64,000 nucleotides of DNA from Lepidodermella squamata (Eukaryota > Animalia > Gastrotricha). The number at the start of each line of letters is the position of its first letter. The first letter of the stretch is position 1. The stretch lies in the NCBI GenBank assembly GCA_047495785.1, contig JBLDXI010000034.1:930001-994000 (forward strand), written 5' to 3'. The notes under the pieces are model-generated. The model had not been told where the DNA came from. It made no database searches and saw only the letters and a list, made by a program, of their open reading frames with translations. This document shows positions 4,424 to 48,995 of this stretch, piece after piece. Both the position numbers and the translations under genes were made by a program.

Positions 4424-5126
4424 CTCAACTTTTTCCGAACTCCCAACTGCTGATATAAAAACACTGCGTTCTTGTTGTTATGTTCATACAACCTGATATA
4501 TTTTTTGAATGTTATTGAACTACTCCGTATCCAATAAACTTCGTCAGAACCTCATCTTAGCATTCAAATATCACAGCAATATCTGCAGGGGCTCTATAAT
4601 CTCCCAAAATGGCACCATTGTGTAAACCAACGTAGGGTAAAGAATCTGAATTGCCTTCAAATGGGAAAATTGGGGATAGTTAGCTTGAAATTAGCTTGAT
4701 TTGAAAATAACCAACTCCTCGAAGAAATCCAAGATTCCAAATCCAAATCCGAACTCTAACTAATCCATTGTCTTTTTTTACAGCTGAGCTTTCCAACTTT
4801 TTCTAAAAACGGATGAATGGATCTTAAATAAATAAATAAAAAACTGTACAAAGTGGTCTTAGCAGCTAGCAGCTTTATTCTAGGAAAATCACCAGAAAGC
4901 TCCGGGAAGAAAGATGAAGACCCAGAGCTTCGCGGTCAATCTTGAAAATTATGGAGATGGAAAGGAAATCGGAAAAAATCGCCAACATCTCAAAGAATGT
5001 GCCGCTTTCTTAACTTCATGGATTACTGTTGAAAAGTGACTTTCCGGCATTGCATTTTCTCGATGGGGAGAGCTTCATCCATTCATTTATCGGCATTTAT
5101 GTTAAAATTCGGAAGTCAGACTTAAG

Positions 5127-6697
5127 TTATGCCATTATAGGATAAATAGCGTTTGTTGCAATGCCACAATGATTAGAGCCACGTAGCATTCGAATGAAGC
5201 CCGTTTCGCCCCAATTAGAGCCCCATGAATTCTGGACCAGCCAATACGGCTTCGACGTTTTGCTATCTTTTCCATAACCAACAACCGTAACAGCATGGTT
5301 CTGGGCGTTCGGATCGCACATCGCGTCGTAATACACCCCTCCAGCGTAGAAGTAAAACGACTGAAGCGATGCATCAATCGCAACGGTAACTGGGCCGAGC
5401 TGAATTGCATCCATTAAGGCGGACTCGTTTTTAGCCGGCAGCTCTACATAGTCAGTTATAGCACCGAATTTCGCGCTAGCCGAGTCGTTGAACAGGCACT
5501 TCACATTCTGTTGATAGGCGTAGGGGTAGGCCAGATTCGAGTTAAGACCGCCTTTTGCCTGTATGTAGTCATAGGCTTGGCTTATATCAGCCCCGTCGCA
5601 GCCAGCTGCTCCAAACTCCTGGGCACAGTCAACTAAATTTTGGGGCGATAGAGGTATCAGGCTCTGATTCTTCGCTTTCGCATAATGGCCCGCAACAGTA
5701 TGAGCAACGCTGAAAGCCCAGCAAGCCCCGCAGTCGAGTTGGTCGCCAACCGGTGACACTATACCAGCCGCTCGCCAGTCCAACTGATCAGGGTACTGAA
5801 CCGCAATCGATTTCGGCTGTGTTGTTGTAGGCGTAGTCGCTTTCGTAGTGGTCGTTGTTTGGCCTCTTTTCGTTGTAGTAGTCGTGGTCTTCAGCGTAGT
5901 TGTTGTTGTCGTTGCTGGTTTTTTGCTGGTTCTAGTCCTAGTTCTGTTGCTTTTCTTGAATCCTAACCGCCTCTGCTGGATCTCGGTTGTATTCAAATCT
6001 GCCAGGTCGTTGAGTTTAACTTCAAAGGTAACTTCCCCGCGTTTCTTCTTTTCGTTATGGGCTTTTACGAAGTCTTCGTTCGACTTGAAATTTCGATACT
6101 TGTTATCATCATCGTCGTCATTATCGTCGTCGTTGTAATCCTTAGATGAATTTCGCTTCGGCCGGCTTCGTTTATCAGTTTTCCATTGCTGATAACCATC
6201 GTCGTTGTCCTGAGGTTTCGGCTTCTTACCAGAGTCTTGAGGTCCGGCGATTCGCTGCTGGTTTTTGCTCTGATTCGCCTGATTGTTCGCACCACTGATA
6301 GATTGTTGCTTGGGATTACTTGGGGAAGTTGGCTGATTTCGGCCGCTGCCTTGATCGCGATCGTTACCAGGTCTATCCCGATCATTACCCGGTCTATCTC
6401 GATTGTTTCCACCACCAGCTTTGAAAATTGTAGTAATGACAAAATCTCCCTTATATCCGCTGAAAAACTTTACCAACAATTACCAGGATAGCCGCTAAGC
6501 AAAGCGTTGTCAGTAATTTCTCCATTTCGGTTTGAAAATATTGAGCTCAAAATTGGAGTAATCGACTTACTGCCCATTGCGAAGAGGATTGGTTTTGAAA
6601 TGTTACACTCTTGTTTACGAAGTCGTGCTTGATACGTGGGTGTACCACGACAGAACGTTAAATTGCCATTGTTTTTTTCTGTGGTAGTGTGCGTCAT
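5127..6697 (-). CDS. CTSL: Cathepsin L-like protease 2 with low-complexity pro-region; true 5' end unresolved (exons ~6697-6484, 6418-5127)
   Basis: QLDCGACWAF, HAVTVVGYG, QNSWG; I29-like KYRNFKSN and KLNDLADL. Phase-1 intron 6419-6483 joins SGYP-A-GGGNNRD. No signal peptide found, so further upstream exons are likely. Confidence 0.85.
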
Positions 6698-26886: not shown

Positions 26887-27984
26887 ATGGGTAAAAATCA
26901 GTACATCTCGAATTTTCCCGCCGTCCCTATGTACCGAAGCTACGGATGCTCAACAGCTCTAAAAGTCTTTAAAGCAATAATTAGCCTGTTACTCCTCGCC
27001 ACAACTTGGTTCATCGCATTTCTACAAAATTGGAACAGCTTCCTAACCTGCATCGACTCCTCAATTTTCGGCATCGAACTACCCACCCAATCCTACCTAA
27101 CCGCCCTGAGTTCAGCCTATTTAATCGGAAACAATCGAACAGCCGATTTCGAAAATTGCCGATCAGAAAATTCGATTTCAATACTGCCGATTCGATTTCC
27201 TGTTGTCCTAACATCGCTACATGTCTGCATAACCTTTAGCCTTATTTCGAAATCGGCCTATGTTCGAAAGGCTGAATTCATCTGGACCGTCCTGATGTTC
27301 CTAATCGACGGATTTCTGCTATTCCTATCATCCATTGCGTTGCTGATTTACGTATCGAATCAAAATTTGGCACTCGGCCAAATCGATATCGCCAAATTCC
27401 TAATCGAATTCAAATCAGGCTATTACAGCCTAGAAATTTCCTATTTAATCCTAATTGATCTAGGATTATGCTTCATCGCATTCACGCTTCATCTACTCCA
27501 ATCTGTTAATTTGAAGCCGATTTCAAGTTATCAAGCAGTGTTTCCAGAGAGGACTGGAGGGTTTGTCTACCGGCCAAAGTGCCTTCAGTCGTACAGCTTC
27601 GCGGTTTTTTCGAAATTTATCCAACGATTACTGCCGATTTTCGCCTCTAATTTCGGCGTAATTTACGCGTTTCAATCAATTTACGGCCTCGCAGTGCGTG
27701 AAAATTCGTTTGACCCACTTATTGACCTCGCCGCGGCCGTAATTATGCTGTGGCATGCGGTTTTAGCCTCGGCCGTTCTACCAGCGTCGCATTGCTACAA
27801 AAGTCCTTACCATGGTAAGGCTACGCTGGTAATTTTCGTGCTTGAAACGCTGGTGCTAAGCTGCGCTGTGGCTGGGCTTGTTTTTCTATGGATTCAACGT
27901 GTTTACCTTAGCTGTTGCATCGGCTACATTGCGGTGGTTAATCTTCTCGTGTGGCTGATTGATTTCGGCCTTCATCAGTTCTGA
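26887..27984 (+). CDS. Orphan multi-pass (~8 TM) membrane protein, paralog 1
   Basis: 365-aa ORF with many hydrophobic segments; shares EFIW/EYIV, PKCLQ, WH-x6-LP-x4-YK and W-x2-DF-x-LH-x-F with the 29.3 and 44 kb genes. Confidence 0.85.
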   Translation: MGKNQYISNFPAVPMYRSYGCSTALKVFKAIISLLLLATTWFIAFLQNWNSFLTCIDSSIFGIELPTQSYLTALSSAYLIGNNRTADFENCRSENSISILPIRFPVVLTSLHVCITFSLISKSAYVRKAEFIWTVLMFLIDGFLLFLSSIALLIYVSNQNLALGQIDIAKFLIEFKSGYYSLEISYLILIDLGLCFIAFTLHLLQSVNLKPISSYQAVFPERTGGFVYRPKCLQSYSFAVFSKFIQRLLPIFASNFGVIYAFQSIYGLAVRENSFDPLIDLAAAVIMLWHAVLASAVLPASHCYKSPYHGKATLVIFVLETLVLSCAVAGLVFLWIQRVYLSCCIGYIAVVNLLVWLIDFGLHQF

Positions 27985-31579: not shown

Positions 31580-31997
31580 TCAGAAGCATAATTTAGGGCA
31601 ACAGTCATTAGGAAACGAATGAAGGCGAAAATCGACGAACCAAATCGCAGCATTCAGCATGCCTAAATACGCGAGATTGAACCAGCTGCGATGCCGCCAT
31701 TGGTAGAACAAAAAGCCGAAATAGCCCAAAAACGCCAGTGTCTGAACGACGTAGAAACCAAACGTCATTTTCGCCTCGGCCTTGTTCTTGTAAACATTAC
31801 AAGCCGGTAGGATAGCTGCAGCTGAGATAGCGTGCCAAAATAGGAAAATCGCCGTTATTAAATCAAGCTTAGGCCATTGAGGAAATTTCGATGTATCCTC
31901 GCCGTGGTAATTATCGTATAGGTCAAGCAGCGACGGGGTGATCGAAATCGAGCTGCAAATCGCCGCGAAAAATGTGACGAAAAATATGAGAGAAACG
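31580..31997 (-). pseudogene. Inverted duplicate of the 3' third of membrane paralog 2
   Basis: Near-identical C-terminal sequence (...HSFPNDCCPKLCF) without the 5' portion. Confidence 0.8.
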
Positions 31998-32487
31998 TGA
32001 ATGAAAAGGCAATAACAAAAGACTTTGTACTTGTAGCCTCTAACCTTCAAACTGACGTTAGCAACCGCGTTAATCCGATATATTCATTGCATTTTTTCAT
32101 GCGATTTTCTCGCATCAAAATTATTGATTTTTTTTCCTGTCCAGCTGAAAAGTGGCTAGTGTCGAGTCCCAAGTAAAATTTGGGGGTGGGTTGGGGTTGG
32201 TTGACAGTGGCTAGATAAACCCTTGTGCACCAGCTTCTAGGGCCGCCTCGTCTATCAGCTACATACTCACTCAATTGCAGAAAAGGTAGTTGCTATGCTT
32301 TTATCAGATGTTTCAGAACTTCTTTTGGTGAAAGCATGAGATATCACCACTCATATTATTCTTTGCAAAAAATGGCGCTCGACAAAAGTCGGGAAAGTGG
32401 CGTTAATAGCGACACTTTTATCACCCTTATCTATGCTGTGCCGTGCAATTTTCCGTGGCAGTTTTGAAAAATTACAACTTATCAAAG

Positions 32488-33795
32488 ATGGGTAATTCAT
32501 ACGCATTTCTCAAAGCAGAGCAGCATACCTGGAACGAGCATACATTGCTGTACGATCATAAAGTTCGGTCTGCAAATCTGCCTCTTGTTGCATCGTTCAA
32601 AAATGCAACACCGCTACTCCTGGCTTACACTGAATCAAGTTGGGGAGGATTAGCTTATCAGCACTGGTTCATCACTGACAATACCAATTATCTTGAATTC
32701 GGCAGTGCAAACCTTGATATATACTCAGCTCGCGTAGCAATTAACACTAATCCGCGGTCATTCACTATCGAAAGACGAACGCTAATGAATGACGAAATCC
32801 GTCTAAGAATGAAGCAGATTGTAGGCATGAGGAACTATTCGTTATGCCTAAGAAACTGCGAGCACGTCGCAAAGTTTGTTTTCGACGCGCGATGGGAGAG
32901 CCAGCAGCTATACCCAAAAGGTGGTTTGATGAAGACATTTCGCAGTTATTTCTTACACAATGCCAAGAGCATGGTAAACTCGGTACCAATTGCAATACGT
33001 CCATTCCGCTTCAGCGATGCGAAGGTTCCGATGTATTCATTTTTTAAGATGGGTTTCCAAGCGACGGGCATCGACTTCTACCTGGACAGCGCTGAAGAAA
33101 CGTACAACATCGCAGTTTTTGGCCCAACTGGAGCTGGAAAGTCTCATCTTATCAATGTGTTGTTCAATCAGAAGAATCTATGTGTTTCAGAGGCAGGACA
33201 TGCTTCTGTTACTAGGGAGATATACTTTGTTCGCGGGCGTGGAGAAATTTTCGATGTTGACAGGCAACAATCGCAAATGCGTAACATCACGATTGCAGAT
33301 ACTGTTGGATTTTGCGACACCAACTGGGATGACGAGGCGATTCTTCGCCTTATCGAAGGTCGGATCAGTGCGAACATGCGTTACTTAAACGCTGTTATCA
33401 TTGTTTTCAAAGCAGACCGACTTGAGCCGAAACACGTTGAAAATATCAAGCACATTCTGAAATGGCTAAAGTATGGAAGGAATACTTTTACAAGATTCAT
33501 TTTCGTCAGCACCAAGGCTGATTTTCTAAGTGATGCCGAAATCGAAAGGCTGAGAGAACAAGCAACCGCGATGCTAGGGATTTCATATGTGGAACGGCTA
33601 TATAACATAAAGAATGGAAGAGTCGAGATACAGACCGTTATGTATACAGGATTTGGTCCTGAGGAACAACTTAGCATTGTTGGCCTTAATCGTGTGAATA
33701 AGAGCCTGAAGCAAATTACACAAGCCTTGTCACTCCCGTCAGACAACCAGGATCGGATTCAAATTCCTCAAGAACGTCAATGCAGCATATTATGA
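32488..33795 (+). CDS. LRAT/PLAAT-like (permuted NlpC/P60) domain fused to an AIG1/GIMAP-like P-loop GTPase, with C-terminal CaaX box; intronless, 435 aa
   Basis: YQHWF and NYSLCLRNCEHVA (LRAT His and NCEH boxes); G1 GPTGAGKS, G2 SVT, G3 DTVG, G4 TKAD; ends CSIL*; first ATG gives MGNSYA. Confidence 0.85.
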   Translation: MGNSYAFLKAEQHTWNEHTLLYDHKVRSANLPLVASFKNATPLLLAYTESSWGGLAYQHWFITDNTNYLEFGSANLDIYSARVAINTNPRSFTIERRTLMNDEIRLRMKQIVGMRNYSLCLRNCEHVAKFVFDARWESQQLYPKGGLMKTFRSYFLHNAKSMVNSVPIAIRPFRFSDAKVPMYSFFKMGFQATGIDFYLDSAEETYNIAVFGPTGAGKSHLINVLFNQKNLCVSEAGHASVTREIYFVRGRGEIFDVDRQQSQMRNITIADTVGFCDTNWDDEAILRLIEGRISANMRYLNAVIIVFKADRLEPKHVENIKHILKWLKYGRNTFTRFIFVSTKADFLSDAEIERLREQATAMLGISYVERLYNIKNGRVEIQTVMYTGFGPEEQLSIVGLNRVNKSLKQITQALSLPSDNQDRIQIPQERQCSIL

Positions 33796-34138
33796 CACTT
33801 GTATAAGAAAATGTAGTTATCCAAAATCCAAAGGAGATATTATTTGGAAGTCGTGCGCATTATATTTCATATGCATTATGAACGTCTATTTAACTTTTAA
33901 CGCTAATTTACAAGCGCGTCATTGTCAAAGATTAAATATAACTTTGCATCCCGCAAGTGTCCGGCAGCTTTCCGCCCAAGTGCGGGATGACCTGCGGGAT
34001 GAAGTGCGGGATGTAGTCTTTACTTATCCGATTATCCGAACCGTCAAGCCGTCAAGCTTGAACATATGAATCAACGCACTCAAACCTCTGATAATAAAAT
34101 ACAATAATCATGCCGCCATAACTCAGCAGCTGAAATTA

Positions 34139-34371
34139 GACTGACTTTGAACGCAATTTCAGCGCGAACCAAGTATCGCCGGTCAATAAATCTTATAACG
34201 GCGGATAGCCCTCGAAATTCTGTACAAACCATTCGCGGCCGCTGACTATATTCGCCGCCGATCGTATCGAAATCGGCTTCAGAAATCGCGATATTGGCCT
34301 TGGCCGCACGCCAATTTGACTGACTTTGCACTTAATTTCAGCGCGAACCAAGTATCGCCGGTCAATAAATC
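34139..34371 (+). repeat. ~50-bp direct repeat pair
   Basis: GACTGACTTTG...AATTTCAGCGCGAACCAAGTATCGCCGGTCAATAAATC near 34139 and 34318. Confidence 0.6.
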
Positions 34372-35714
34372 CGGCCAATCAGTGTGCGAAGTAGGATTTT
34401 CGAGCTGGTGTGTTCCTATGTTAAGCGCCACAAAAATTGCGAACTCGACATGGAGGAAAATTAGCTGTAATTTTAACCCATGAAACGAGCGAAGCGAAAA
34501 ATGTTACCGATTTTTTCGGTAAGAAAGGGTTTCAAACCCTCCTAACAATGACTGTTACAGAATAAACTTTTATTAATTTCCCATTGTCACATTCTTATTT
34601 GGCTAAATAAGCGCCCTTTATTTACGAAACTAAAAAATGTCAAATTAGCAGCTTTTGCAGTCATAATCGAAATGCCGGTTAGACGCAACAATGGTCTTAG
34701 TCATGGATTGCGCCAGATCCATTAGCAATGCTGGATTTCTAAAACAGTGCTCCGCAAAATTTGTTACTGCCGGCCATTTTGGCGGCTGGCAAGCCACGGA
34801 ATTATCTACTATCTTACAAGCTCGAAATCAACAAAATTTCGGTTTCAATCAACTCAAGACGCTAAAAAGCAATGCTGGAACTGACAGGATTGAGAATAAA
34901 GTGCTGCATATCTCAACATTACCAGCAATTTCGGGCATACATACGAGCGGAGCGAGAAATTTTTCGAAAATTTACTCTGAAGAAGGGTCTGAAATATCAT
35001 AAAAACGGCAAGGCAATGAGATAAATGAGATAATGCGGAGCACTGCTCTAAAACAAATGGTTTCTATAACAATTACTATTAGGGTCGATAGTCGAACGTT
35101 GAATTAGCCACCGTTGCAAAATCCCCATTACAACCTTAAACCCGAATGCGAGCGCAGCGAGCTTTTGCTGTGAGCTTTTTGAAGATTGAGTGTCAGGAAT
35201 AGCCGGAAACAGCCATTGTGTCCTCACTGTGGAACCAAAAAAGGCTCTTATTATTTTTTTAGAAAATCCAATAAATGACGGAAGATGAGAAAAACAATTT
35301 TTTCATGCGAATAGTGTATGACCACGGTCGCCGACCGCTCCGACCACCTCCACCACCATGACGCATTGAACAGCAAAAAAAGTGGACTTTGACACTGCAA
35401 ATCCAGACTAAGATGTTAGGTCGAGATTGCCCTGACCGCATAAAACCCCTTCTGTCGCAAACGAAACCTAGCGTGGATGTGGTTGCGTCGTAACTCATCG
35501 CTAGAAATTGCCAGTTGAGACCCGGCGCGCACTGGTTGTCGCCTGAAGCGAACGGCCTTACAGAGAATACGCGATTCGCATAAGCACTGAATCCTAACCC
35601 GGTCTTTTCAGGAGAATACTGCAATACTACCCTGCCGTCTGATGCGAGCGTGGCGAAAAACGAGATGGTGTAGCTGCCAGTCGCCAGTTTGAGCTTCTCG
35701 CCATTCACAATGTA

Positions 35715-44014: not shown

Positions 44015-45223
44015 ATGGTCTGTGCAACCTGGGTTATTCTGAGCGTTAAAACCGTCAATTGTGCAGCCGGGCTCATCAATTTGATCCTGATATGCTGGAC
44101 AGCTTTCAGCTATGTAACAACGTCAACCTGCATCAACCAGTGCGTCTACGAGTACAAAGAAGCCCTGCAATACCCGACGTACGCGAAATTGGCCGAAATT
44201 AAAAACTCTGACGCAGGCCAACAATTCAGCGCATCAGGGCAAGCTGATAAGGTCGAAATAATCCTTCGACGAACCATAGGAACAGCAATCGATCCTCAGC
44301 CTGATTACGAAACTGGCTACAAAGCTGTGTTGACCCTTTACAATAACTGCAAGGACCCATGTGACGCTGCGATATTACCTATTCGAATACCAGTTGTAAC
44401 AAGCATCATCCATCTATGTCTTTGCGTTATTTTTCTACTTAAAATCTCATTTTACAGCAAAATTGAATATATAGTCCTTCTTATTCTCAATTTACTAGAC
44501 GGTGTTTGTTTGATCTTCTCGTCCTATTGTTTGATCTCACTTAAGATGAATAACAAGGAATATCACTATGGAATTCACGAGATTCAATACGTCTTCCCGA
44601 ATGGGCTTCCGATAGTTTCGTTTAATACCAGCCTTTATCTATCTCTAGTTTTCTCGGTTTTAACAATTATTTCTTTTCTTGTTCAAATGTCGCTAGCTCT
44701 CTGTAACCCTCGAATTACTGAGGTAAGTCAGACCGTTAAGGAGGAGTTTTTCGTCTATAGAATAGCTGCGTTGCAAGATAGGAAAAAGTCCGCCTTAATG
44801 AAATTTTTCAACTGCTTCTTCGCTTTGTTTAACTCGTTAAGCTGCGCCATGATTTGGTTTCACTCAATTTACGGCTTTCGGCTGGAACTCGGCGTGTTTG
44901 AACGGCAGCGAACAGCTCAGACGCAAATGTTGTGCCAATTCCCAATCTTCATCTGGCATTTAATCATGTGCTTCGGCGTGCTGCCGACATCGCATAGGTA
45001 TAAAAACATTTTTGAAGTGCGACTTGTGTTGGCTGTCTATGTGTTGGAATGCGTGGCCTTATTTGGCCTGTTCGTCGGCGTTTTGATGATTGCAGGCGAC
45101 GGTGGGCCGTTGTTACACTTTGAGGCTGCCCTTGCTTTAGGCAATCTTGTGTTTTGGGCTGTTGATTTTTTACTGCATTCTTTTCCTGGGCCGTGCTGTT
45201 CTAATACAACAGCGTGGCAGTGA
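44015..45223 (+). CDS. Orphan multi-pass membrane protein, paralog 3
   Basis: 402 aa; ILPIRIPV (ILPIRFPV in paralog 1), WHLIMCFGVLPTSHRYK, WAVDFLLHSFP. Confidence 0.87.
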   Translation: MVCATWVILSVKTVNCAAGLINLILICWTAFSYVTTSTCINQCVYEYKEALQYPTYAKLAEIKNSDAGQQFSASGQADKVEIILRRTIGTAIDPQPDYETGYKAVLTLYNNCKDPCDAAILPIRIPVVTSIIHLCLCVIFLLKISFYSKIEYIVLLILNLLDGVCLIFSSYCLISLKMNNKEYHYGIHEIQYVFPNGLPIVSFNTSLYLSLVFSVLTIISFLVQMSLALCNPRITEVSQTVKEEFFVYRIAALQDRKKSALMKFFNCFFALFNSLSCAMIWFHSIYGFRLELGVFERQRTAQTQMLCQFPIFIWHLIMCFGVLPTSHRYKNIFEVRLVLAVYVLECVALFGLFVGVLMIAGDGGPLLHFEAALALGNLVFWAVDFLLHSFPGPCCSNTTAWQ

Positions 45224-45918: not shown

Positions 45919-48900
45919 TTAGGCAGCAATATTGAAAGCCGCTACGACAGATTCGTAGTCCAAATCTATGCGAGGAATGATAATTATATGAACAAACAAG
46001 AATACTATGACGGCACATATCAGAGAGTAAATATCAATGGTACGAACCAAGCCGATTCTGCCATTAAAGTACCGCTTCTGAGGCCTGGTTGAGGCATTTG
46101 GATCATAGTAAGATGCAGCAATCCACAAAACCACCAGGTTGTAAATGGTCGCTGCGATGCAAAACCAAGTCAGACCCTGAACCAGCTTGCCGAGAAGAGT
46201 CTCATAAGGCTTTTTAGGAACTTCATTCAAAATCGCACTCTGCATGACAGTCATTGTTAGAAGAACGGTGACAGAAAATGTAGCACGATCTGTTGAATCA
46301 GGTGGCATCATGAATAAGAATAAATTTAAAGAGGCGAGGGTCGATGATGGAATGGCGAAATTTTTTATGTAATACCACGGATTCCTTCGTAAAACCACCG
46401 TGAATTTGAATGTAGAAACGAAGAAGCCTCGATAAAAATCTTTGCCAGTCGCATTCCCGGTCGAGACTATGGTCCAGCTGTCTCCGGATTGTGAATGCTT
46501 GAAATCGAATAGAAGGTCTTCCTCATCAACAAGCAATAGATTGATGTCTCGCTCAAGGGAGAATTCGAAACTGCAAATTTGGGTGTCGAATGGAAACAAA
46601 TGAAGGGATAGCTCGCAGCTTGCCTCGAATAGGCCTTCTTTTTGCCAGTAAAATTCGAACGTTCGATTAATTTTTGGCACCTTCGAAGACATCATCATTA
46701 AATAATCATCGTTGATGATCATGTTTCGCATTTGGAGGTTCGAGTTGGCTGCTGATAGAAAGCGGATCTTCGGTAGCCATAGATTGCTGAGATTGTCGAT
46801 GTAAATGATTTCGAAGTTTCTGCCAGTTGGGAGGGCAGGCGAAGAGAACCACGGGCATGTACTAACTCGCCAATAAAGAACCATCAGAGCTTTTACAGTT
46901 ATGATTTCGCCAACTGTATCTATCTCATTCAAACCCATTACTTGAAAGCCAACGTTCACCTTGAGAGGGGCATCGTAATTAGACAAGTTTTCGCCATTCC
47001 GAGGGACGTAAACTGAAGCGTTGAAGTGGTCACATCTTCGCTGAATAGCAGTCATGTTATCGATATAGTTGAATTGTGGGATTCCGAAGATTGGTACCAT
47101 TTGCTCTGCGATAGATTTGCCACTCGAGTAGACTGCATTCTGAGAGGCCAGACGGCCACATGAGTTGCTCAAGTTGAAGACTTCTTCAGGGCTCAAAGCC
47201 ACGTTGTAGAAATGAAAACAAGCAAATTGCGTGTCCGGATTTTCAACAACTAGCTGATTTTCTCGTCTGTAGCCAATACCTATTTCCAGCGAGAGTTGGT
47301 CCATCAAACCTCCACCGATTGGCATTGCCGCATGAAAACTGTCACTTGAGCTTGAGCATTTATCTGTCGAAAAAGGGGCGAAAAATCATTACGGAAATTA
47401 TTTAGCTCTCTTCCCCGTTTGCGCTAGTATTTGGCCTTTCCTATTACAGCGAATCCGAGTAATGGCACCATAGGGTCCCTACTGTAGTCGTTTTGAATAT
47501 TTTCGCTTAGACTCGTGAGCTGGGGGTAAGACTTGGACTGAATACCCCGGTGCTTCGCACACACAATAAGATAGGCCCTTCGCCCACTTCAAGCGGTCCT
47601 ACAAGCGATCCGAAAACCCCTCCCTTCAATTCAGCGAGGGTTAAAAGTTGGGATGATTATAGTGTTAGTTGATTGAAGGAATTCACCTTCTGATGTAAGT
47701 TCTAGCGCGTAGGTCACCGCAAGTGAATGTAAATTGCAGGTTTTTGCAACAACGTCCACCGTGATTGCGAAAAACATCCAAGTTTCAAGGTATTCATATT
47801 TCACAGCGTGCTGTCCATCATCCTTTTCCTCGTACATAAAATGTGTCAGTGATGATCCATTACTACTGGGAATGAGCATGACAACCGAGTGGTCATCATC
47901 GCTGTCTCTCAGATAGCAGAATACGGTTAGGAACCCAAGAATAGTAACAATTCCGCTCCCATCCGTGTTGTCGCCGCCCCCGTCTTTGCATGCCGTTAAC
48001 TTGATGTAAAATGCGAAGGTAAATGCAGATTGCGGCCGTGGCAGGCCGTCGTAGGCAACCACGCCACGAGCTGGATTGATGTCAAAATCGGTCATATTAA
48101 AGGCAATGCTGCCGTGCGCATACGGTCCTTCAAATTTTGTCTGCTTCGCATTGTAAGAGCTGGGCTGGCGAGGTAAAATGACGTTGCCATCCCCGTCCCA
48201 GCCGAGTAGATTCGAATCAAATGAAAGTGGCCAAAATCCGATGAGGTTCTCTGGGCGAGGGATCTCCGCCATGTCTATTCCACCGATTTCGCCTATCATT
48301 GCTTTAGCTGCGTTCCGGCACGGCGTGAGATACAACGCCTTCACCTCAGCCTCAGTTAAGGCGGCTTTGTAAAATGAAACACATGATACAGTATACGCTC
48401 CGTCTTCTTTTTCTCCAAACACAAATTCCCGCGACGTCTCATTGATGTATACTTTCATCGGAATTTTCACTTCTTTGCGTGTAAGCTTGTTAATAAGATT
48501 ATTCATTCGATAGAAAAAAGCGGTATTCGTCGGATTGTCGTAAGTGACAGCCATCATGTAGCCATCCGCGTAGAGAGATTCTGGAGCTTCTGAACGGTTG
48601 CCTTGCCAACTATTTGGGCTCTTTTGCAAATAAAGGCTATTGTAAACCATCCTGAATAAGCCTTCCAACGCAATTGTGCCGAATTCGTAGGCAGTGTGCA
48701 CCGAAACCGTGAACGATCTTGTAGTTTCAGGTATCGTATAACTTGCCAGTCTTGCTCCTCTTCCCTCGTAGTAACCAGTATTTCCCACATTGTTCCGGCG
48801 AAATTTAGCCTTACTGTTTGTTTGACGCGGTCGAAGTTCTTTGTTTGTTCGCGTGTACCCGGTGAGGCCGGAATAGGCGTCCATAGGCCAGAATGCGACC

Positions 48901-48995
48901 AGTTTGTCCAGGCGTGGTAGTTGAAGCTCTGAAACATCCAAGCAGGTAGTACCTGCAACTACACACCCAACTAAAAAACAGAGGTTACACTTCAT
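45919..48995 (-). CDS. Tandem LamG/pentraxin-like domains fused to a Cys-loop ligand-gated ion channel, copy 1, 917 aa (exons 48995-47687, 47363-45919)
   Basis: Signal peptide; two LamG-like repeats (LVAFWPMD...SCVSFYKAALTEAEV; LIGFWPLS...ACFHFYNVALSPEEV); phase-1 intron 47364-47686 joins TSE-D-KCSS in frame; WLPKI, CELSLHLFPFDTQIC, RRNPWYY, M1-M4. Confidence 0.88.

Follow-up and report, generated by a model that had tools for sequence, protein, structure and literature searches.

Does a single open reading frame that appears to join an LRAT/PLAAT-like lipid-enzyme domain to a GIMAP-like GTPase represent a real gene, and if so, what might its product do? This question is raised by a locus on the forward strand of a 64,000-nucleotide stretch (hereafter the window) of contig JBLDXI010000034.1 from the gastrotrich Lepidodermella squamata. 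An earlier note, made by reading the sequence without database searches, proposed such a fusion with predicted lipid anchors at both ends. We followed it up by homology searches, structure prediction and an analysis of sequencing-run contigs.

Gene structure and transcription

The open frame extends from 32443 to 33795 on the plus strand, with its first ATG at 32488 and the stop codon at 33793–33795, and encodes 435 amino acids. The earlier note placed the reading frame at 32488–33795; these coordinates are exact, and the frame is a single intact run of 435 codons. By our own arithmetic, a frame of this length would occur by chance with a probability of ~1e-12 per start at 42% G+C. The G+C content over the gene region (0.424) equals that of its surroundings. 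A tblastn search of the whole 64-kb window with the protein returned the self-match only, and no second copy of the gene. The sequence motifs originally listed (MGNSYAF, YQHWF, NCEH, G1–G4 and CSIL) can all be read from the translation, and they are selected features rather than chance strings because they are kept across the family alignment described below. The observation of a fusion gene is confirmed as real. The features of the locus are given in Table 1.

Table 1. Features of the fusion gene and its product, in window coordinates.
Feature	Position	Strand	Basis
Complete coding sequence, single exon, 435 residues plus stop	32488..33795	+	Full-length homologues at 43–50% identity; identical X2 DNA contig
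Met-Gly (predicted N-myristoylation site) and two family-specific helices (residues 2–17 and 24–36)	32488..32598	+	Alignment, motif count, model
LRAT/PLAAT-like (H-box/NC, permuted NlpC/P60) domain, approximately residues 40–160	32605..32967	+	Pfam, hhalign, fold matches, ESM Atlas
His59 (YQHWF)	32662-32664	+	Translation
Glu70	32695-32697	+	Translation
NCEH, residues 123–126	32854-32865	+	Translation
Cys124	32857-32859	+	Translation
Linker, residues 161–204, low model confidence	32968..33099	+	Alignment, model
AIG1/Toc34/GIMAP-type GTPase domain and C-terminal helices, residues 205–415	33100..33732	+	Pfam, Foldseek, VIA-align
G1 GPTGAGKS, residues 212–219	33121-33144	+	Translation
G2 Thr242	33211-33213	+	Translation
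G3 DTVG, residues 271–274	33298-33309	+	Translation
G4 TKAD, residues 342–345	33511-33522	+	Translation
CaaX box CSIL	33781..33792	+	Family alignment
Probable 3' untranslated region, AATAAA at 34093-34098	33796..34098	+	Sequence; X1 contigs identical to at least 34071

Contigs from two sequencing runs were compared with the locus: X1, whose type is guessed to be RNA, and X2, which is DNA-like. Over 32551–34071, X1 provides contigs without a mismatch to the window, at an even depth of 15–20 and covering both halves of the gene, and it provides none in the flanks at 32208–32509 and 34624–34925. The X2 contigs cover every bin, and one of them is identical over 32138–34001. Coverage by X1 begins 63 nt into the coding sequence, at 32551, where one contig ends in 22 loose letters that we take to be the reverse complement of the SMART IIA cDNA primer. 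This match supports a cDNA origin of X1. A spliced leader at 32551 was considered and rejected, as the loose letters, read as the primer complement, mark cDNA origin, not a 5' end. The fusion gene is apparently transcribed. The earlier note required a transcript spanning both domains; cDNA-type contigs do cover both, but contigs cannot prove that the two derive from one molecule.

A conserved family of fusion proteins

Among 5.8 billion proteins, a word-indexed search with the whole protein as query matched 31 homologues, of which most (~30) are full length, share 43–50% identity with it and agree with it in length and architecture. The named homologues are A0A914E5C3 of Acrobeloides nanus, annotated as "AIG1-type G domain-containing protein", and two proteins of Adineta ricciae. 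The remainder come from metagenome or Logan contigs, and none of the 31 is a named protein from a model species. A tardigrade homologue, from Paramacrobiotus metropolitanus, was recovered when only the GTPase half served as the query. In the ESM Atlas, the family forms a cluster of 67 members, all of which are eukaryotic. At the tardigrade locus (L005 4516–5837; BHEN01000074.1), the LRAT-like half lies directly upstream of the GTPase half in a different reading frame. The frame change, near 4970–4977, accounts for the start of the database protein LOC129595068 inside the linker, and may reflect a mistake in the assembly or a genuine break.

In an alignment of 23 family sequences, His59, Glu70, Asn123, Glu125, His126, Gly217, Lys218, Thr242, Asp271 and Gly274 are invariant. 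The position of Cys124 is occupied by Cys in 21 of the 23 sequences and in the other two by Ser, which is also a nucleophile. The window protein has a branch length of 1.14, compared to a median of 0.45, in the family tree. The tree is poorly resolved and gives the window protein no supported sister; it is therefore uninformative on vertical versus horizontal descent.

Judged by these comparisons, the LRAT-like/GTPase fusion is a conserved, unstudied family with members in rotifers, nematodes and tardigrades. The papers found on LRAT/PLAAT together with AIG1/GIMAP or GTPase do not describe the fusion and only list the genes separately, and the fusion is also absent from an Aravind-group paper on conflict systems and from a GIMAP evolution paper. 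The view that no characterized protein has this architecture holds in that we found no publication on the fusion, but databases already contain unnamed members, and UniProt holds A0A914E5C3 and A0A815MJL8 as uncharacterized proteins.

The N-terminal LRAT/PLAAT-like domain

The Pfam LRAT family (PF04970) matches 19 of 20 family N-terminal domains. The window protein scores below the gathering threshold of 24.3 bits (18.3 bits for the whole protein and 19.8 bits for the N-terminal domain alone), with a match that covers the part around the NC motif only; its homologues P0021, P0049, P0054, P0067 and P0072 exceed the threshold, with 25.6–31 bits. P0091, a protein of 131 residues with a hydrophobic tail, is a clear member of the LRAT family (64 bits). 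An hhalign comparison of the family profile with P0091 gave a probability of 97.7% (E 1.5e-12). It pairs His59 with the H-box histidine of P0091, Glu70 with a glutamate, and NCEH with NCEH, and the RWxSxQ stretch is aligned as well. The ESM Atlas returned an LRAT cluster after the protein's own family. A search of PDB sequences with the domain profile gave a marginal match to HRASLS2 (E 0.078); an otoferlin match in the same search was rejected as spurious.

In the predicted structure of the domain (pLDDT 74.6), five strands precede the helix with Cys124, which is the permuted order. In the AlphaFold2 model, His59 is located on the second strand (residues 55–63) and Glu70 on the third (68–71), while Cys124 lies at the N-terminus of the helix, whose start is at 119–120 in both models. 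The best Foldseek matches are the 2A H-box/NC proteins of parechovirus and Aichivirus, TIG3 and PPPDE. With VIA-align, the Aichivirus 2A protein (Z 5.9) and PLAAT4 (Z 5.7, rmsd 2.9 Å over 87 residues, 20% identity) fall in the Z range of 5–6 that is middling by the program's own scale. PLAAT4 has both the lowest rmsd and the highest identity among the fold matches of this domain. Further matches include YiiX, PPPDE/deSUMOylase (Z 5.0), CLN5 (Z 4.0), a Bacillus NlpC/P60 peptidase and TseH. Of the top 8 matches, 7 (ranks 2–8) are permuted papain or NlpC/P60 proteins. The fold scores are modest but the list of matches is coherent, and from these matches together with the profile comparison with P0091 we place the modeled domain in the permuted NlpC/P60 class. 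The earlier note had proposed that the domain would model in this way, and the order of strands and helix agrees with it, as do the fold matches to PLAAT4, 2A and PPPDE.

The catalytic triad of the PLAATs is Cys-His-His, with the histidines on strands β2 and β3 and an Asn at the second place in PLAAT1, and NlpC/P60 enzymes have a Cys-His-polar triad (PMC10102619). The positions of His59, Glu70 and Cys124 in our model match the PLAAT arrangement given in the same study (PMC10102619). These three residues sit at the predicted triad places. The third of these places has the invariant Glu70 where PLAATs have His or Asn; Glu is polar, as NlpC/P60 allows, and P0091 also has a Glu here. In other respects the domain resembles PLAAT1-5 and LRAT: the NCEH cysteine lies at a helix start, the H-box histidine is on a preceding strand with the polar residue one strand on, the sheet comes first and the helix after it, and both profile and fold matches connect them. 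However, the fusion protein carries an additional N-terminal helical extension of 40 residues with a myristoylation signal, and it lacks the C-terminal transmembrane tail of PLAAT1-4 and LRAT, having a linker, the GTPase and a CaaX box there. The picornavirus 2A proteins of parechovirus and Aichivirus share the H-box/NC fold and are among the top Foldseek and VIA-align matches, but they are viral and have neither a GTPase nor lipid anchors. Some 2A H-box/NC proteins lack catalytic competence, according to a preprint (bioRxiv 10.1101/2024.04.06.588386).

The same fold matches bear on the nature of the substrate. The N-terminal domain might act on proteins, as thiol deacylases or peptidases of the PPPDE/DeSI or CLN5 kind do, and the GTPase would then bring it to membrane proteins that are lipidated or conjugated. 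PPPDE/deSUMOylase, YiiX, the NlpC/P60 peptidase and CLN5, which is described as a depalmitoylase, all appear among the matches, and weak Peptidase_C97 matches are present in 3 of 20 family N-terminal domains. Deacylation of proteins by PLAAT4/RARRES3 has also been reported (PMC4905368). However, the closest relatives by sequence are LRAT proteins, to which the NCEH, H-box and RWxSxQ elements align at the hhalign probability given above, and PLAAT4 is the closest of the fold matches in rmsd and identity. We therefore regard a protein substrate as unlikely.

The GTPase half

The Pfam AIG1 family (PF04548) matches residues 207–354 with 32.4 bits, above its 27-bit cut-off, and MMR_HSR1 matches the C-terminal half with 32.1 bits. 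The AlphaFold2 model of the whole protein, built on the family alignment, has a pLDDT of 80.7 and a pTM of 0.76. For this half, the leading Foldseek matches are Toc34/Toc33 and GIMAP2/7 (E ~1e-7). By VIA-align, the order is Toc34 (Z 17.4), YsxC (17.0), GIMAP2 (15.7), GIMAP7 (15.4) and septins (~14). Since YsxC/EngB ties with Toc34 in Z, the subfamily assignment rests mainly on Pfam. Comparison of the whole protein with PDB sequences detected septin P-loop regions only. We read the C-terminal half as a TRAFAC GTPase of the AIG1/Toc34/GIMAP clade, not as a strict GIMAP. The earlier label of a GIMAP/AIG1-like GTPase is thus upheld in its AIG1 part, which is above the Pfam cut-off, but the domain is not a clear GIMAP and is better described as AIG1/Toc34-like.

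The G1–G3 motifs are invariant or nearly so in the 23-sequence alignment. The G4 motif of the family is T-x-A-D/E, with the lysine kept in 5 of 23 members and replaced elsewhere mostly by Tyr, Phe or His. As this lysine is not conserved, the specificity for GTP is only putative.

The likeness to AIG1, GIMAP and Toc34-Toc159 proteins (the paraseptin clade of TRAFAC GTPases) lies in the AIG1 score, the best structural matches, the presence of G1–G4 and the C-terminal helices that follow the G domain. In contrast to these proteins, which share only 12–16% identity with it, the fusion protein has an enzyme domain joined to its N-terminal side, has mostly lost the G4 lysine in its family, and matches YsxC as well by Z. 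Its predicted anchor is a prenyl group, whereas GIMAP1/2/5 and Toc34 have a transmembrane tail. GBP1/2/5 are also GTPases that end in a CaaX box, and their lipid anchor brings them to target membranes in cell-autonomous defense. The resemblance to them is a functional analogy only: GBPs are dynamin-like, with a large helical domain and without an enzyme domain, and no GBP match to the fusion protein was found in the Pfam or fold searches.

Lipid-anchor signals and the linker

The proposal of lipid anchors at both ends of the protein stands at the level of predicted signals, which are conserved in the family. A Met-Gly start that fits the PROSITE myristoylation pattern (G-{EDRKHPFYW}-x(2)-[STAGCN]-{P}) is found in 18 of 23 members, and most of the exceptions seem to have mis-called starts. 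The helical extension behind it contains the invariant residues Glu11, Trp15 and His18. At the other end, 22 of the 23 members have a C-terminal CaaX box, with a final Leu in 18 of those 22. A final Leu in a CaaX box predicts geranylgeranylation by GGTase-I. Conserved motifs are also present in the linker, namely VNxxP (with invariant Asn164 and Pro167) and YYLD (Leu199 and Asp200), and the model has an extra β-strand (residues 191–196) before the G domain.

Putative function

In the interpretation that we favor, the gene is functional and transcribed, and its product is a peripheral membrane enzyme, namely a tethered phospholipase or acyltransferase regulated by GTP. We give this interpretation about an even chance of being correct, and its mechanism is conjectural. 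The N-terminal domain would form an acyl-enzyme through a cysteine, with Cys124 as the nucleophile, His59 as the base and Glu70 as the orienting residue. The C-terminal transmembrane tail by which vertebrate PLAATs are targeted would have been lost, with a GTPase of the AIG1/Toc34/GIMAP type and a geranylgeranylation box in its stead, and the N-terminus would be myristoylated. Together, the two lipid anchors would hold the protein on the cytosolic face of a membrane. Binding of GTP, probably with dimerization of the G domain as in its Toc34, GIMAP and septin relatives, would then set the access of the LRAT-like domain to phospholipids, and this domain could then remodel or rupture the target membrane by phospholipase A or acyltransferase activity.

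By analogy, defense or the response to membrane damage would be the most likely biological setting. It is favored because the genes are fast-evolving and because of the known roles of PLAATs, GIMAPs and prenylated GBPs. PLAATs reach damaged organelles only when they have their hydrophobic tail, and PLAAT4 relies on its catalytic activity to restrict pathogens (PMC10102619). In its fullest form, the proposal would be that a GIMAP/Toc34-type switch gates a PLAAT-type membrane-rupturing enzyme held by two lipid anchors, and that this effector of cell-autonomous defense or damage response is patchily distributed among bdelloid rotifers, tardigrades, some nematodes and the present animal. We put this forward tentatively and consider it possible, though doubtful as a whole.

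The distribution of the family is also the basis of a different proposal, in which the protein would serve housekeeping lipid remodeling or membrane repair in limno-terrestrial micro-animals, for example during recovery from desiccation, with the GTPase as a targeting device or scaffold only. The animals with named homologues, namely a bdelloid rotifer, Acrobeloides (a nematode) and Paramacrobiotus (a tardigrade), all belong to the desiccation-tolerant fauna of soil and moss. PLAATs, moreover, move to the membranes of damaged organelles (PMC10102619). Against this, the long branch of the window protein and the frame change in one tardigrade copy suggest a family prone to turnover more than they do a housekeeping gene, and a housekeeping or repair role is in our judgment improbable.

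If the GTP-regulated, tethered enzyme is the correct interpretation, the family would provide a natural one-protein system for the control of a lipid enzyme by GTP, with Cys124, Lys218, Gly2 and Cys432 as sites for point mutants. Its covalent joining of a PLAAT-type enzyme to an AIG1/GIMAP GTPase bears on the membrane targeting of PLAATs and on the biochemistry of AIG1/GIMAP proteins. The restriction to rotifers, tardigrades, some nematodes and related micro-fauna bears on their unusual shared gene content.

Origin of the gene

The earlier note suggested that the intronless gene could be a retrocopy or a horizontal acquisition, and the data speak against this. In A. ricciae the copy spans exactly 1350 bases (L002 6001–7350) and is thus intronless too, gene calling gave single ORFs for the metagenomic homologues, and the neighboring cathepsin-L and Cys-loop receptor genes of the window are single long ORFs. 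The sequence has no poly(A) remnant after the gene or after the AATAAA signal. No prokaryotic relative was confirmed among 185,579 species genomes (one per species; 600 pattern matches), and no viral relative among the IMG/VR viral contigs (11 pattern matches). With homologues and neighbors intronless, no poly(A) and no prokaryotic or viral relative, a retrocopy or recent transfer is unsupported. The lack of introns and the patchy distribution among animals, with no named match in a model species, could be cited as signs of a copy without a function of its own, whether retroposed, recently acquired by horizontal transfer or decaying as a pseudogene. Such a copy is very improbable in view of these results, the background G+C content, the intact frame with all catalytic and nucleotide-binding residues, the cDNA-type coverage, and the eukaryote-specific lipidation signals kept throughout the family. 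An old exchange among micro-fauna is conceivable, and the patchy spread of the family could reflect gene exchange among co-habiting micro-animals.

Genomic surroundings

Several other features of the window were recorded. Papain-family (cathepsin L-like) genes are located at 1192–1911 and 5127–6479, both on the minus strand and both single long ORFs, one of which has an I29 propeptide. A cathepsin is also found 2–3 kb upstream of the homologue on a metagenome contig (L001). Long ORFs without a Pfam match at E 0.001 are present at 26887–27984 (+, 365 residues), 44015–45223 (+, 402 residues) and 47631–48995 (−, 454 residues). Just upstream of the fusion gene, on the opposite strand, an ORF of 156 residues (31580–32050) is rich in hydrophobic stretches. 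Contigs of the two runs differ at 12 positions over 31750–31996, which indicates that a diverged second copy or allele of this segment exists.

Two high-copy stretches flank the gene. The shorter, at 32057–32207, lies ~300 nt ahead of the ATG and reaches an X2 depth of ~2,000, with a 1-nt deletion variant in 10 contigs. The other (~34020–34470), immediately after the 3' untranslated region, has a summed X2 depth of >17,000, compared to ~42 over the gene, and the X1 contigs have several joints between opposite strands in it. It contains a direct repeat of 59 nt (34134–34192 and 34313–34371), whose copies are 179 nt apart and 93% identical. This element looks like a MITE-like or satellite repeat.
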